A stretch of 63,949 bases of DNA, counting the filler, from Pelomyxa schiedti (taxonomy: Eukaryota > Protista > Evosea): assembly GCA_020536535.1 (NCBI GenBank). It is 5 parts of 5 records of this genome, joined end to end, with 100 filler letters (N's around TTAATTAATTAA, not from the genome) between each part and the next. Parts side by side here need not be neighbours in the genome. Positions count along the whole stretch, not along the records: positions 55,659 to 61,876 come from JAHLWZ010000737.1; 4 more parts are not named here. One strand, written 5' to 3'. Made by a program: the position numbers and the translations under genes. Of the stretch, positions 55,659 through 61,876 are shown piece after piece. The first letter of the stretch is position 1; every line of letters starts with the position of its first letter. The notes below the pieces were generated by a model. It had not been told where the DNA came from, did no database searches, and saw only the letters and a program-made list of their open reading frames with translations.

Positions 55659-56430
55659 ATTGTCTTTTACAACAGTTGTTGGTTTTGGAGGAATGAAGTC
55701 AGTGAGTCTCCGTTGCTTCTTTCCTCTGGGCTGTTCAAAGGGTGTTGTGCTCTAAAACCAAATCAATCAAAAAAAAAAAGAAAACTCTGTCACACAAAGT
55801 TATATAGAAGTTTCCACTTTACGATCGCATTAGAATATGACTAATATATATATATTGCTTTACAACATACATACCTGCAAGTGAGGGGTTTTGTTACGTG
55901 CAGCAGTTGCATCAAAGTAAGCATTCAAAAGCCTGCCCAAACTGGCTTCATCAACGATTTCACAATCGACATCAATTACATCCACAATTTGTTGCTGTTG
56001 GTGCACGCCGCTAATTTTTTGCTTGTTTTTTTGGTGTGAGGAAGCTGATGATGGTGGTGGTGGAGGATTGTGACAGTATTGCTGTACAAGCCTCCTAGCA
56101 AGCTCAACGTCTAATAGACATTAGTTTGTCTCATAGGAAGTAGTTGCGCGAAAAACGAGTGTGCATAGGGAAAAACGAGAGATTGACTGTCCAGCGGAAC
56201 GCGTACCCAAGTTGGCTTCGCCTATTATTTCGCGCAGGGCATTCATGTCGACGACCGGGTTGGAGCGGCACGTTTAGTGTTTGATTAGCATCTGGTGATG
56301 ATACGTTCGGCTTCTGTGAATCCCTTTTTGATCAAAAAGACAAGGTGCGAAGTGCTGCACCCAAAACTAAGTTGTTTGCAGAAAAAGTGAAAAAAAGTCC
56401 AAAAGGGAAGTAATTTGCATAGCCACCACA

Positions 56431-59226
56431 TCACTCCTTTGTTTCACTCTTCCAGTATCCTGTTCCATACCTTTTGTGAAGTGATTCAAGTGGGAATGGA
56501 ATGGAATACACACAACATATCAGCACGAGGGTATTTCTCCCTCATCACAGGGCCACAATCTTTGCCCAGGGTGCACACAATCACTGACGAGTTGATAATC
56601 ACACTGTGATCGGGTTCCTGTTCCATAATTTTAGCGGTTTGGTGAAAATTGAAGGGGCAGGCAAACGCATACCTGAGGACCACCCTCAAGAACAAAGTTA
56701 TAAAGGGTTCCAACATCGGCAACAACACGCAACACAGCGTCCTTGTGATCACATGCCCGAACCCACTCCCCTGTTTCTGTGTGTGTTGTTGTTGCCGGTC
56801 GTTTGATGAGATTATGATTTCTTGTTATTGGGTACTATTATTATTGTGATTATTTATTTTTGATGGATGGTAATCAAAAAGGTACCTCCACAATGTCCAT
56901 CATCACCATCAGCGGATTGTTGATGTTGATGCTGTTGCCACACAGGGTGGCCTGTTGTGAGTCCGATTCCATTGATGAATGCCAGCCGCATTGGGTTGGT
57001 TCTCGTGGATGACTGTATCAGGGCAACTGCGCGGCCCCGGTTGTTCTCAGTCATCACACAGTCTCCCGGTTGGATATTGCTGACTGCCCTGTGTGTGTGG
57101 TGAGTATGTTATGGTGGTGTTATTGCGAGGTTTGTATCAGTAGATGCCATGCCAATCAGGAGAAATTTGTGTGGGATGGGAACAATTTGGAGAGAAAAAA
57201 GCGGTGTAGAAGAAGGGGGAAGGAAATTACTTTGTTGTGCCATCAGACATGAGAACTCTGCCATCACCAAGGAAGCATGATGGGGGTTCCGGACCCTGTT
57301 GTGAGTGAGTGGTGACGGTAAGGTGGACCTGATCGTTTGGGAGGTGTGAGAAGAGTGGATGGTACACACACAGTGTAAGGTGAAACCGGACCGATCGGAA
57401 CCAACGGCGATGGATTCTTCCACGCAGGGATGCCTGTTTCGGGAAGGGTCAGGTCAACACAAGGAATTGTGCGTTGTTTGTTTATTTATTGGAGTGTGTG
57501 CGTACACAATGCCTTCAAGCCGGTTCCCCCGTGCAATTCAACGGGAANNNNNNNNNNNNNNNNNNNNNNNNNNNNNNNNNNNNNNNNNNNNNNNNNNNNN
57601 NNNNNNNNNNNNNNNNNNNNNNNNNNNNNNNNNNNNNNNNNNNNNNNGATGAGAGTAAGATACTTGCAATATGAACTGTGATGGTATCGCACTTGTGGAA
57701 AACGTCCTTGTGGGGGCAATTCCTTCCAAATCTTCGTTGCCAGATTGAACTCTGTTGTGGTGATGTGAACTCCTTTCAAGGAATAGAATGGGAATTGGGC
57801 ATGAACCATAAAAGCCATCAGTGGCCACTCCTGCAACAGATCCACCAAACAAATACAGTTTGTTGTCGTGACTGGCAAATTTTGATTAGGGAAGGTGGCT
57901 ATCCAAGGGGGGATCACACATACATCACAAGAGTTCCACCGTAACTCTGTGGTGGGAGTTTTGGATTTACTGGCACAATGATGTCCAAACGGGACGTGGT
58001 TGTGTCAAAGACCATCAATGCACTTACAGCAGGGAGATGAGATGTTCCACCAAAGAAATAAACGAGTTGGCCGTTCATTGCAGTGCAGTATGCCGGAAAC
58101 GGAGGAACTTGCACTTGGCCAGTGATTAATTGCCATCTGGAATCCGGTGATACTGGGAGTTCCAAATAATGGGCATCCAAATAGACTATGTCTTTACTGC
58201 GACCACCAAATAGGTACAGGCGATTCCCACAAACAGCGCAAACATGACCATACCTGTAAAAAAGGAAGGGAATGACTTCAGTGCAACAGATACCATTGAG
58301 AGTCGAAAACACACACGCCGAAGCCACCAGCGAAACCAGTGACCCCAGATAAAGGTTCCCATCTGTCTCCTTGTCTCTCAATTTTTCTCCCGAGAGTGTG
58401 AACGAGCACGTTGAACAACGCATTGCCTCCAGCAGAACTTGTTGCAGTATTGTACTCAAGATAGTAAACAGCTCCAATTCGCTTTGCTTCCTATGTGCGT
58501 GTCATTTATTGTGTGGAATATCGGAGAAAGAAAACCAAATGTTTTGTACCTGGATGCACTGTTGACGCGTAATAGCTACTGGCTTTTCTGGGAGTTCTTT
58601 GATGCCAACAAGAAAAACAGGTGTGAACCGTTTGTTGTTCCAAACCTCTGGGAACCACTGCAGTGTGCATAACTGTTAAATAAAAAAAAAAAAGGTCATC
58701 AGGGGATGGAACCCGGCGTGAAATAGTCTCGAGTGAATAATGGAGTGAGAAGCACAGGACAGCTGCATCAGAGACAGAAGTGTACACCCTTGGTCTTGTC
58801 CAATCACCCCACATGTTGGATACATCTTTTCGTGTGGTGGGAGTTAGTGTGGGGGGGGTGAATTCTCATAGACTGAACAAACTCCCACAAACCATTTAAA
58901 GTGACTGCCACAAGTTCTCCTGAATGCAGCATCATAAGGATAGAAATAACAAAAAAAAAAAAAAAAAAGGACAGAAATCAACCGTTTGACATCCAGTGCA
59001 GGTTCCAGGTGCACCTGCCACCCTCCATGGAGGTGGTCCCACTGCTATATTCACATGGGTTCTGAACTGGTGCATCTGGTCCCTGGTTCAGTCCAACAAG
59101 TTCTCTCACCAGTTGATTCTGCATTTTTTTTAACACAAAAAAACACAAAAAAACAGTGCGCACCCTTCCGGGGCTTTCATCACCCAATACGAGAATTTGT
59201 TTGCCGGCACGCTTGTGTCCTGACAT
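56431..59226 (-). CDS. Degenerate Rho-like GTPase / Kelch / [F-box, mostly in gap] / Hint (Vint-type) protein, copy A; spans the 57548-57647 gap
   Basis: ATG 59226 MSGHKRAGKQILVLGDE; DAAVLCFSL; QWFPEV..TPVFLVGIK; AKRIGAVYYLEY; RYGHVCAVCGNRLYLFGG; VYFFGG; after the gap PSCFLGDGRVLMSDGTTK|AVSNIQPGDCV..GLTTGHPVW..LYNFVL..VCTLGK; TGA at 56431. Confidence 0.75.
57548..57647. other. Scaffold gap (100 N)
   Basis: N run without the linker motif. Confidence 0.95.
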
Positions 59227-59391
59227 GTACACCCACTACCAATGCCGTTTCGGTTTTTTTGTTTTGCTGTCTTTTGGTTTTTGGAAAAAACTCATTTTGA
59301 TCAATCCCACATTCTTGCACAGAGTAGTGATGGTGGGCGATGATGAAATTGTGGGAGTGATCCCAAGGCACAAAAGCATTTTGTTAATCCA

Positions 59392-61081
59392 TCACTCCTT
59401 TGTTTCTCTCTTCCAGTATCCTGTTCCATACCTTGGTCAAGTCAAAAAAACAAAAACAAGTCAAGTGGGAGGGGATACACACAACATATCAGCACGAGGG
59501 TATTTCTCCCGCATCACAGGTCCACAATCTTTGCCCAGAGTGCACACAATCACTGACGAGTTGATAATCACACTGTGATCAGGTTCCTGTTCCACACAAA
59601 ATATGGCTTGTGAAAATTGGAAACGGAAAAGCAGGGAGACACACCTGAGGACCACCCTCAAGAACAAAGTTATAAAGGGTTCCAACATCGGCAACAACAC
59701 GCAACACAGCGTCCTTGTGATCACATGCCCGAACCCACTCCCCTGTTTCTGTGTGTGTTGTTTCGGTTTGTGGGTGGCTATTAGTCTCACTGTACGTTTT
59801 TTTGGTTAGTTTTATTTACATTATTAGCCGCGGTGTGTTTGGGTGGGTTGGTTGTTACCTCCACAATGTCCATCAACAGATTGTTGATGTTGATGTTGTT
59901 GCCACACAGGGTGGCCTGTTGTGAGTCCGATTCCATTGATGAATGCCAGCCGCATTGGGTTGGTTCTAGTGGATGACTGTATCAAGGCAACTGCGCGGCC
60001 CCGGTTGTTCTCGGTCATCACACAGTCTCCTGGTTGGATATTGCAAACTGTCCTGTGTGCTGTGAGTATGTGACCGTAATATGTATATAAAAACGTACAA
60101 AATAAGATAGTTTGTAGAGAAAAATGCGATGATGCAACAGAGAAGGAAGGAAGTTACTTTGTTGTGCCATCAGACATGAGAACTCTGCCATCGCCAAGGA
60201 AGCATGATGGGGGTTCCGGACCCTGTTGTGAGTGAGTGATGGTAAGTGGAGTGAGAAGAGTGAATGACACACGGTGTAATGTGAAACCGGACCGATCGGA
60301 ACCAACGGCGATGGATTCTTCCACGCCGGGATGCCTGTTTCGGGAAGGGTCAGGTCAACACAAGGAATTGTGCGTTGTTTGTTTATTTATTGGAGTGTGT
60401 GCGTACACAATGCCTTCAAGCCGGTTCCCCCGTGCAATTCAACGGGAAGGAATTTCTTCCACACTTCATCTTTGACACAGATGCAATATAATTCCTTTGA
60501 CACCTGTGACTCTCCCTGTTAAAAAAAACCCAATCGGGAATGGGAAAACTCACCGCTCCCAGCCGGCAAATGTCATCCGCCTCCAAGAATGAAATCACTT
60601 GCATCCAGCAGTCTGGCGGGAAAACCTGACATGCGGACAAGGTTCCACCATCACTTAGCGTGAGAGATGGTGCGAGTTTTGTGATGGTATTCTGCTCTTG
60701 CGCAGTCTCTGGAAAGAGTGATGGAGTGACTGAAATGCATCCATCATCCAATATCGCACTGGTCATTGACCGCCACATCCCACTTGTGACGATGATGTGA
60801 TTTCTCCACGCAGTGATCCCAAAAAACTTGGGGACAGTTAATATGGCAGAAGGAAACAGCTCACACAACCTCTCTCGAAGCGGGAGCCATTTGCATTTCC
60901 ATCTTCCTCCAGGTGAATGTGTTCGTGTCAAAACTGTTGTGTTGTTATTCGCCTACCGATAATATGTTGGCAGGGAAAACATACTGAAAAAACTCACATT
61001 GTGGGTTCGCGTTTGAAGAGCCAACGAACATGAAGGAGTCATTGTTCAACAAACACCCAGCGTGGCCTCTTTGGGGTGTTG
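59392..61081 (-). CDS. Kelch / F-box / Hint (Vint-type) protein, copy B; 5' part missing at the gap
   Basis: RGHAGCLLNNDSFMFVG; FDTNTFTWRKM..APASRE|FFGITAWRNHIIVTSG; F-box FPPDCWMQVISFLEADDICRLGA|VSKELYCICVKDEVWKK; splices in frame to IPAWKNP..HYT|GPEPPSCFLGDGRVLMSDG; TGA at 59392. Confidence 0.8.
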
Positions 61082-61181
61082 NNNNNNNNNNNNNNNNNNN
61101 NNNNNNNNNNNNNNNNNNNNNNNNNNNNNNNNNNNNNNNNNNNNNNNNNNNNNNNNNNNNNNNNNNNNNNNNNNNNNNNNN
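61082..61181. other. Scaffold gap (100 N)
   Basis: N run. Confidence 0.95.
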
Positions 61182-61876
61182 AATGCCTTCAAGCCGGTTC
61201 CCCCGTGCAATTCAACGGGAAGGAATTTCTTCCACACTTCATCTTTGACACAGATGCAATATAATTCCTTTGACACCTGTGACTCTCCCTGTTAAAAAAA
61301 ACTCAATCGGGAATGGGAAAACTCACCGCTCCCAGCCGGCAAATGTCATCCGCCTCCAAGAATGAAATCACTTGCATCCAGCAGTCTGGCGAGAAAACCT
61401 GACATGCGGACAAGGTTCCACCGTCACTGAGCGTGAAAGATGGTGCAAGTTTTGTGATGGTATTCTGCACTTGCGCAGTCTCTGGAAAGAGTGATGGAGT
61501 GACTGAAATGTATCCATCACCCAATACCGCACTGCTCATTGACCGATGCATCCCACTTGTGACGATGATGTGATTTCTCCACGCAGCGATTCCAAAGAAC
61601 TGGGAGAACGTAAATACCACGCAGATAAAAGAGGAAACAGCTCACACAACCTCTCTCGAAGCGGGAGCCATTTGCATTTCCATCTTCCTCCAGGTGAATG
61701 TGTTCGTGTCAAAACTGTTGTGTTGTTGTCGTCAACCGAAAATATGTTGGGTCAAGAAAACATACTGAAAAAACTCACATTGTGAGTTCGCGTTTGAAGA
61801 GCCAACGAACATGAAGGAGTCATTGTTCAACAAACACCCAGCGTGGCCTCTTTGGGGTGTTGGTGGTGTTCCACGG
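61182..61876 (-). CDS. Kelch + F-box segment; probably the misplaced middle of copy A, or a third copy
   Basis: Paralogous to 60409-61081; its first ~40 nt are identical to 57508-57547 at the edge of the other gap. Confidence 0.7.

Follow-up and report, generated by a model that had tools for sequence, protein, structure and literature searches.

Scaffold JAHLWZ010000737.1 of the anaerobic amoeba Pelomyxa schiedti (6218 bp) lies in its entirety, reversed, at positions 55659-61876 of the 63,949-nucleotide stretch of DNA analysed here (the window), and consists of three contigs separated by two 100-N gaps. Repeat analysis showed that it holds one minus-strand gene in two tandem versions, copies A and B, ∼2.95 kb apart. 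The gene encodes a protein in which a degenerate small-GTPase fold, a Kelch propeller, an F-box and a Pro-rich linker are followed by a C-terminal Vint domain, a self-processing domain of the Hint type. From its sequence and from structural models there is about an even chance that the product is a substrate receptor of a Skp1-Cul1-F-box (SCF) ubiquitin ligase whose Vint domain cleaves itself off at its first cysteine (Cys1) as a regulatory step.

The Kelch, F-box and Vint domains are encoded by one spliced, expressed gene

An earlier note on this DNA had spliced copy B through GT-AG introns into one frame leading from Kelch blades through an F-box and a linker into a Hint domain. All the motifs quoted in it were found on the minus strand and its reading was borne out: ten exons separated by nine GT-AG introns gave 365 open codons with one terminal stop, against 11 and 16 stops in the other frames. 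Genes of P. schiedti contain 7.4 introns on average, 98% of introns being of the GT-AG type (PMC8887013). The joined window model was checked for frame by scripts and database searches were done exon by exon; single window exons matched Pfam weakly (Vint, E 0.02; F-box, E 0.025) and the GTPase exons not at all. The fold matches and full-length Pfam scores given below were obtained with the paralog Pelo_4933 (P0002) or the NCBI model P0001 rather than with the window model.

RNA was available as single-cell contigs, all runs coming from one study, from which neither strand nor expression level can be read. Run X3 contained joints of copy B at 59429/59481, 59585/59644, 59748/59859, 60221/60272, 60500/60551 and 60826/60870, together with the acceptor at 60933. 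In the 5′ part a joint was seen at 57870/57924 (Kelch), and the intron at 58712-58658 was spliced in record 24 of run X4. The joints observed are those of copy B and the 5′ part; copy A introns appeared unspliced in some X3 contigs (DNA or pre-mRNA). The single transcript from F-box to Hint that the earlier note required was found as record 23 of run X4, a 797-nt RNA contig from a diverged copy (∼90-95% alike) reaching from the Vint C-terminus through block A to a point upstream of the F-box; the 89 letters that it holds between 60416 and 57277 equal the length predicted by the spliced model (9+62+18). RNA record 21 joins Kelch positions 57807-58045 to 61876-61766 and 60933-60697 and, together with the gap-free paralog Pelo_4933, shows the full domain order. 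The genes are spliced and expressed.

Two paralogs, Pelo_4933 (780 amino acids) and Pelo_2368, lie on contigs free of N and show the entire architecture with the same introns. The window exons match Pelo_4933 in order, with 51-94% identity; the 18 introns of this paralog agree with the window model in residue position, an 8-codon mini-exon included. In Pfam, Pelo_4933 matched Ras (residues 88-171), Kelch, F-box (541-582) and Vint (623-754; 46 bits, cut-off 27). Copies A and B are 91-100% identical in their exons and 58-71% in five of six introns. Over the linker and Vint domain, dN (non-synonymous divergence) was 0.012 and dS (synonymous divergence) 0.114, a ratio of ∼0.1, which is rough given the few changes involved (14 synonymous, 5 non-synonymous).

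The Vint domain retains the residues for N-terminal Hint chemistry

Pfam Vint was matched across the family with 43-85 bits (cut-off, 27). The model of the domain from a paralog (predicted local distance difference test score, pLDDT, 80.7) matched Hint folds exclusively. The best structural match was the Tetrahymena Vint 8R2C (Z 13.8 over 131 residues, root-mean-square deviation 3.0, C-terminal tail included), which was also the best match in sequence (E 4.5e-13). The next in line, BIL2, a BIL, Hedgehog and inteins (Z 8-12), all ended at model residue 135-136, the alignment with Hedgehog 1AT0 (Z 11.3) reaching residue 136 only. Cys1 and TxxH, named in the earlier note as nucleophile and block B, were found intact in 22 of 22 members (∼40-60% identity), and the Vint/Hint assignment made there is upheld by profile and fold. 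Also invariant were the block-F His, CTLGxxCG, a Pro and GxGxW. The tail that follows CT (30-59 residues, with invariant CG, P and GxGxW) aligns with that of 8R2C, and four introns lie inside the domain. Pfam Hint (PF01079) reached at most 24 bits (cut-off, 29.7), over the first 30-50 residues only, and no Pfam match was obtained to VWA (23 proteins) or to Vwaint (PF14624), in whose place the F-box and linker sit.

The terminal Asn of inteins aligns to model residue 135, the Thr of CTLG. Since His-Asn/+1 is replaced by Cys-Thr-Leu, canonical splicing and C-terminal cleavage are excluded, and only the N-terminal chemistry would be left. In the structural alignment (model 136 aligned to 401) the invariant CTLG Cys and C143 of Hedgehog are one residue apart, and by this model a relay from Cys1 to the CTLG Cys is possible; at the position of Hedgehog D46 no invariant Asp was seen in that strand (by eye). 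The cleavage site proposed in the earlier note, between Ser and Cys of PSCF, does fall in a linker that is disordered (low confidence) in the Pelo_4933 model (residues 598-624). Cholesterol transfer as in Hedgehog, to which it referred, found no support: the sterol-recognition region (motifs J-L) was not found in Pelomyxa Vint and no secretion signal was seen. We rejected the idea that cleavage exposes a Gly C-terminus which the propeller of the same protein would take for a C-degron: the residue before Cys1 is too variable, and the KLHDC R/F-S-R anchor was not identified.

A GTPase fold, a six-blade propeller and an F-box precede the Vint domain

In the AlphaFold model of Pelo_4933 (mean pLDDT 65), the N-terminus leads directly into strand 1 of a small-GTPase fold at residues 10-186 (Z 18.6 to Rac1, 18.7 to Sec4). 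Pfam Ras scored 23-82 bits in five paralogs; for the paralog with the modelled GTPase fold a Ras score of 26.6 bits was obtained. Pelo_4933 has Rac1 as its best match (E 3e-7) and P0008 a Rab5-type protein (E 2e-17), which makes 'Ras-superfamily fold' a safer term than the 'Rho-like' of the earlier note: the superfamily stands, with a weak Ras profile, and the assignment to Rho is unclear. Copy A has GDESPGRN as P-loop, DVSN at switch II and GIKE at G4, where GxxxxGK[ST], DxxG and [NT]KxD are expected, and is unlikely, from these motifs, to bind nucleotide. P0007 and P0008 retain GxxxxGK[ST] and TKLD, P0008 also DxxG (GSEQSGKT, DPAG, TKLD). The GTPase part is probably a pseudo-GTPase in copy A, a point that had escaped the earlier note, and near-intact in paralogs.

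Residues 207-505 of Pelo_4933 form a six-blade Kelch propeller (Z 24-27; ∼26 to KLHDC10, KLHDC3 and LZTR1), its nearest structural matches being the cullin-ligase receptors KLHDC10/3/2, LZTR1 and FBXO42. In blades 5 and 6 (P0002 residues 419-427, 440-448, 471-473 and 491-500) the motifs PTPQRG, S-x-N-x-N-P-x-x-E, REF and R...S..L.D are invariant across paralogs of ∼33% identity, which suggests a conserved pocket on the propeller face.

The F-box was matched by Pfam at residues 200-239 of P0001, and most Kelch members scored at or above the F-box or F-box-like cut-off. A family F-box profile matched solved F-boxes (best E 1e-6). Three helices were modelled, and all ten Kelch members carry the LP, W, L, L, W pattern. 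In every one of them the F-box is C-terminal to the propeller, an order to which the earlier note had drawn attention.

The Vint domain belongs to a Pelomyxa family with several N-termini

Comparison of the largest Vint exon with 1.84 billion representatives returned three Pelomyxa proteins and two matches that were dismissed as low-complexity noise (P0004 and P0005). Three homologue searches yielded 22 proteins of P. schiedti, a count to be read as a lower bound (at least 22), and one of Pelomyxa sp. JSP with this Vint; none came from another genus, although these searches were word-seeded and length-limited and absence elsewhere is unproven. Outside Pelomyxa, no Kelch-F-box-Vint protein was found among the proteins searched. 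The earlier note had overlooked this Pelomyxa-wide family.

Ten of the 22 P. schiedti proteins have the Kelch-F-box-Vint architecture, seven of these ten with a Ras-like match. Among the other proteins found, nine share a domain that matches nothing known; P0010 is an F-box-unknown-Vint protein, and P0020-P0022 contain WD40, ankyrin or WWE together with a weak, split F-box-like segment. In a tree of Vint domains (22 rows, without outgroup, the shortened model P0003 being left out) the Kelch members fell on one side of a branch with 97/95 support. Conservation across this clade was highest for Vint (52%), followed by F-box (42%), Kelch (39%) and GTPase (28%).

Several members deserve separate mention. 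A Fic fusion in P0009 (L004 3001-8080) was rejected, as its 760-nt 'intron' holds a skipped GTPase start and two neighbouring genes were probably merged; the short end of P0003 (L002 9359-9700) was likewise rejected as a retained intron, the genome encoding the full CTLG...YGSGFW tail. P0006 shows a weak Peptidase_M28 match at residues 1-230 in place of the GTPase fold and may be a merged model. P0010-P0019 (e.g. P0011 275-305) share F-x-C-G-x-H-P-R-x-G-x-x-S-P followed by an L-x-x-D-x-L-x-x-I helix, which is reminiscent of helix 1 of an F-box or of a SOCS-like box; the H-P-R-x-G motif had no Pfam support and no F-box profile match. The ∼240 residues preceding Vint in these proteins form a conserved domain with no known match that ends in F-R-K just before the Cys. 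In P0020-P0022 the F-box-like segment lies ∼110-160 residues before Cys1 and is split by an insert with a conserved C-x-C-x-H or C-x-x-H, possibly metal-binding; this split F-box is weakly supported by the sequence.

DNA-pattern scans for relatives found none in viral contigs or prokaryotic genomes, with patterns that were Pelomyxa-specific and would miss eukaryotic genes hidden by introns; their sole match was a weak Hint-like one in a phage-like metagenome contig (L003 783-1001; 31% over 70 residues). A search of the ESM Atlas with the full protein gave no match. Numerous Vint clusters of the Atlas, stand-alone or U-box-VWA-Vint, are assigned to Nucleocytoviricota (giant viruses); a tie to the origin of the Pelomyxa domain is possible, and these clusters alone are no sign of transfer.

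Assembly of the scaffold and coordinates of its features

The P. schiedti assembly was made from single cells and scaffolded by RNA read pairs (PMC8887013). The tandem order of copies A and B is real, since a single unitig (record 6) spans the copy B stop (59392) and the copy A start (59226). Neither 100-N gap is a true 100-nt spacer. Contig 3 (61182-61876), a second version of 60409-61081, opens with the final 40 nt of contig 1; the final 77 nt of contig 2 are found again inside contig 3, at 61786; contigs from two DNA runs extend past 61081 into the letters of 61863-61876 and onward (loose ends); and a DNA unitig of about twice single-copy depth joins 57426 to 60328. These overlaps, read continuations and doubled depth mark the F-box region as a repeat that was collapsed in assembly. 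The most likely place for contig 3 is gap 1, where it would supply the missing middle of copy A. Copy B simply ends at gap 2, and the letters past it do not continue that copy; at both gaps the flanking letters do not adjoin one another, and a reading frame must not be carried across. About 41 codons of copy A, together with its last Kelch blades and its F-box, are hidden in gap 1, and the 5′ half of copy B is lost at gap 2. The whole gene is visible in no single window copy: copy A alone shows the GTPase-like part, and the F-box is seen in copy B and contig 3 alone.

NCBI calls one gene on the scaffold, Pelo_9435 (KAH3758758.1), spanning 59392-61683, and leaves copy A unannotated. The doubled F-box of Pelo_9435 was rejected as a chimera of contig 3 and copy B across gap 2. 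The intron at 60335-60406 is 100% identical to 57434-57505, the next five introns being 58-71% identical, which suggests that the end of the F-box was either collapsed in assembly or recently homogenized by gene conversion.

Another spliced gene (MNALREIIG...) starts on the minus strand at 55860-56246, ∼185 bp past the copy A stop. Its next exon has poly-Pro and poly-Gln; it is unannotated on the scaffold and had no credible Pfam match. A DNA unitig over it differs from the window at ten positions and may represent an allele or a second copy.

Table 1. Positions in the window of the exons, domains and gaps of the tandem gene
Feature	Position	Strand	Remarks
Copy B exons 1-5	61081-60985, 60933-60870, 60826-60554, 60503-60407, 60334-60273	minus	GT..AG bounds
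Copy B exons 6-10	60222-60158, 60052-59859, 59748-59645, 59586-59483, 59431-59392	minus	GT..AG bounds
Copy B last two Kelch blades and spacer	60623-61081	minus	Exons 61081-60985, 60933-60870, start of 60826-60554; RNA joints
Copy B F-box	60453-60622	minus	Split by intron 60553-60504; Pfam F-box E 0.025, first exon alone
Copy B conserved W-x-N-P-x-P segment and Pro-rich linker	60205-60452	minus	Ends at predicted scissile Ser-Cys bond
Copy B Vint (Hint) and C-terminal helical tail	59392-60204	minus	Cys1 codon 60204-60202; Pfam Vint 43.2 bits, cut-off 27
Copy B block B TxxH (TTGH)	59911-59922	minus	Invariant in 22 family members
Copy B CTLG	59533-59544	minus	At place of intein block G His-Asn/+1; invariant
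Contig 3 last Kelch blades and F-box	61182-61876	minus	Exons 61876-61766, 61714-61651, 61599-61327, 61276-61182; open frame; exons 94-100% identical to copy B
Copy A degenerate small-GTPase-fold domain	58315-59226	minus	Exons 59226-59164, 59118-58983, 58919-58893, 58825-58713, 58657-58550, 58490-58315; putative start codon at 59226; open frame, GT-AG introns; 56-86% match to Pelo_4933 residues 9-208; copy A 5′ part, 368 open codons
Copy A Kelch blades	57664-58253	minus	Exons 58253-57924, 57871-57807, 57751-57664; Pfam Kelch_6/Kelch_2/Kelch_1 above cut-off on first exon, weak Kelch on other exons
Copy A F-box tail end and Pro-rich linker	57278-57547	minus	Exons 57547-57506, 57433-57372, start of 57295-57231
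Copy A Vint (Hint)	56431-57277	minus	Exons 57295-57231, 57088-56886, 56776-56673, 56617-56514, 56470-56431; Cys1 codon 57277-57275, stop 56433-56431; open frame; Pfam Vint E 0.011 on one exon; copy A 3′ part, 205 codons plus stop
Assembly gap 1	57548-57647		Longer than 100 nt; Pelo_4933 residues 374-596 otherwise unplaced in copy A
Assembly gap 2	61082-61181		Removes 5′ half of copy B

Comparison with known systems

Vint genes were described as intracellular VWA-Vwaint-Vint genes, four of which carry a U-box (Burglin 2008; PMC2362128). The Pelomyxa proteins resemble these in their Hint-like domain, which is C-terminal and contains motifs A and B (Pfam PF14623), in being apparently intracellular and, given the U-box of some classical members, in their tie to a ligase module. 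They differ in lacking VWA and Vwaint, in having a GTPase fold, Kelch and F-box (or WD40, ankyrin, WWE or unknown domains) upstream, in the number of genes (at least 22) and in an invariant CTLGxxCG and GxGxW of their own. The domain is a Vint by profile and fold, and the proteins stand outside the VWA-Vwaint-Vint gene family. With Hedgehog and Hog proteins they share the Hint fold, Cys1, TxxH, another conserved Cys towards the end of Hint, a C-terminal position with a tail, and variable N-termini; in contrast to these, Pfam Hint stays below cut-off, the sterol-recognition region and any visible secretion signal are missing, the second Cys is offset by one, and the N-terminal part is a putative ligase adaptor rather than a ligand. 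Inteins and the BIL/BUBL proteins (Tetrahymena BIL2, 6TMM) have the Hint fold, Cys1, block B and block-F His in common with them, and in BUBL Hint chemistry is likewise tied to the ubiquitin system in a protist; Cys-Thr-Leu and the lack of a C-extein, an endonuclease and ubiquitin-like domains set the Pelomyxa proteins apart.

The Kelch receptors of cullin ligases (KLHDC2/3/10, LZTR1, FBXO42, plant Kelch-F-box proteins) combine a six-blade propeller of the same type with an adaptor-binding box, and the propeller of LZTR1 binds a Ras-family GTPase; unlike them, the Pelomyxa proteins use an F-box rather than a BC-box or BTB, have a GTPase fold fused in cis and carry a Hint domain. FBXO42 and the plant Kelch-F-box proteins have the F-box N-terminal to the propeller, the opposite of the Pelomyxa order, and RhoBTB fuses an atypical Rho domain to a cullin adaptor. 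In KLHDC receptors the adaptor box follows the propeller (PMC11568203), and in poxviral and Orientia ankyrin proteins the F-box follows the substrate-binding repeats (PMC9414399). None of the ankyrin-F-box proteins or RhoBTB shows a Kelch-F-box-Hint arrangement, and as whole proteins they are not homologous to those of Pelomyxa. The P. schiedti genome paper (PMC8887013) mentions neither Hint nor intein, F-box or Kelch, and the literature searched, most subscription journals being outside its reach, describes no Hint-F-box fusion. The architecture, with which the earlier note was unfamiliar, was absent from the papers and proteins searched; what the note had missed is that automatic Pfam hits on 'hypothetical' proteins at NCBI reveal it.

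Proposed mechanism and alternatives

As we picture it, a cytosolic SCF-type substrate receptor would be produced as a self-processing precursor. The F-box would dock on Skp1-Cul1, and the propeller would pick substrates, aided by the GTPase-fold domain, which in copy A may serve as a nucleotide-insensitive scaffold. Cys1 would attack the carbonyl of the preceding Ser in an N-S acyl shift at the Ser-Cys bond, after which water or a thiol of the cell would resolve the thioester, perhaps once it has been passed on to the invariant second Cys (that of CTLG); this would set free a Vint fragment of ∼155 residues. No splicing is possible, because a C-extein, the Asn and a +1 nucleophile are lacking. 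Because the scissile bond lies only ∼40 residues past the F-box, removal of Vint might be an irreversible switch or a timer for the receptor, affecting its assembly, activity or turnover, and would probably be gated by whatever binds the conserved C-terminal tail. In favour of this proposal, Vint is the best-conserved domain, Cys1 and TxxH are present in 22 of 22 members, and dN/dS over linker and Vint is ∼0.1; the propeller has its nearest matches among cullin-ligase receptors, and other Pelomyxa Vint proteins also carry an F-box or weak F-box-like segments, as some classical Vint proteins carry a U-box. Several points weigh against it. Cleavage and Skp1 binding are predictions from sequence and a structural model, and what cleavage would regulate is conjecture. 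At the block-F position, where most inteins have Asp, 20 of 22 members have Asn (block assigned by eye), and cleavage may be slowed or prevented as a result. Before Cys1 the residue varies (K, G, S, A, E, P, T), so that there is no selection for a specific new C-terminus. In single paralogs the F-box often scores close to the Pfam cut-off or under it, and the F-box region of the full model has a pLDDT of just 50-60.

The same Asn and the variable -1 residue, which includes Pro and Lys, are what would be expected if Vint stayed on as a ligand- or redox-sensing or protein-binding module and cleavage were rare or absent. Three invariant cysteines in an anaerobe, a tail conserved beyond the needs of cleavage and the disulfide that can form between C1 and C143 of Hedgehog (PMC12054796) point the same way; yet a fully conserved Cys1 at the domain start, TxxH and a disordered linker just upstream are hallmarks of autoprocessing domains, and we regard such a sensor as unlikely. 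Alternatively, a specific nucleophile (a substrate lysine, a small molecule or a lipid on the tail) might attack the Cys1 thioester, perhaps after relay, so that the GTPase-Kelch-F-box module would become covalently attached and bring SCF to a target or membrane without ATP. The second Cys of Hedgehog (C143) makes a branched thioester (PMC12054796) and the invariant CTLG Cys lies one residue off it; Tetrahymena BIL2 is reported to couple a ubiquitin-like domain to a Ras GTPase via an isopeptide bond (PMC8616854); and the tail of 30-59 residues, with its CG, P and GxGxW, aligns with that of 8R2C. No acceptor is known, however, the Cys is shifted by one residue with respect to C143, and there is neither a sterol-recognition region nor (by eye) a conserved Asp at D46, and coupling of this kind seems rather unlikely. 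A broader proposal, doubtful at present, makes Vint a portable cassette on self-activating ubiquitin-ligase receptors (GTPase-Kelch, WD40, ankyrin or WWE plus F-box), in which a ligand or redox cue would trigger thioester formation and then either a self-cut or covalent coupling to a target or membrane via a two-cysteine relay.

The remaining explanations carry less weight. That Vint autocleaves on a protein which is no SCF receptor, the F-box-like segment being a relic, a spacer or a cassette-mate of Vint, would fit the weak or split F-box matches of several members; it is made improbable by an F-box of three helices, 42% conserved, whose LP, W, L, L, W pattern recurs in each of the ten Kelch members. 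Many unrelated N-termini within one genome and related stand-alone Vint clusters in giant viruses recall a selfish or neutral passenger, a mobile intein-like domain spread among genes and harmlessly removing itself. Such a domain would hardly be expected to lack a homing endonuclease, to contain four introns, to follow architecture in its tree (Kelch clade, 97/95), i.e. vertical duplication, and to be under strong purifying selection, and this explanation is very improbable. An artefact of assembly or gene modelling, with neighbouring genes joined across gaps, comes to mind with two gaps, collapsed repeats and the chimeric Pelo_9435, but can practically be discounted: the stretch of copy B from F-box to Vint lies inside one contig, an RNA contig links the two domains, and the architecture recurs in ten database proteins encoded on other contigs, the two loci checked being free of N.

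Significance

To our knowledge, no natural role has been assigned to Vint domains. The component parts described here are all known and the chemistry is not new; what is apparently undescribed is a lineage-specific architecture and expansion of a known self-processing domain, in a family that seems confined to one poorly tractable genus. The Vint family had previously been defined in VWA fusions only, and the at least 22 Vint genes of Pelomyxa show its modularity. About half of them sit on putative receptors with a clear F-box, which points to the ubiquitin system as a place of Vint action, and as small, soluble natural precursors these proteins would offer a readable output (Skp1 binding, substrate turnover). 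A ligand-gated Hint, if that is what the domain is, would be useful in protein engineering. If the portable-cassette proposal were true, Hint chemistry would be wired into SCF control, for which there is no known counterpart; and if cleavage or coupling does gate an SCF receptor, Pelomyxa would possess a new mode of ubiquitin-ligase control.

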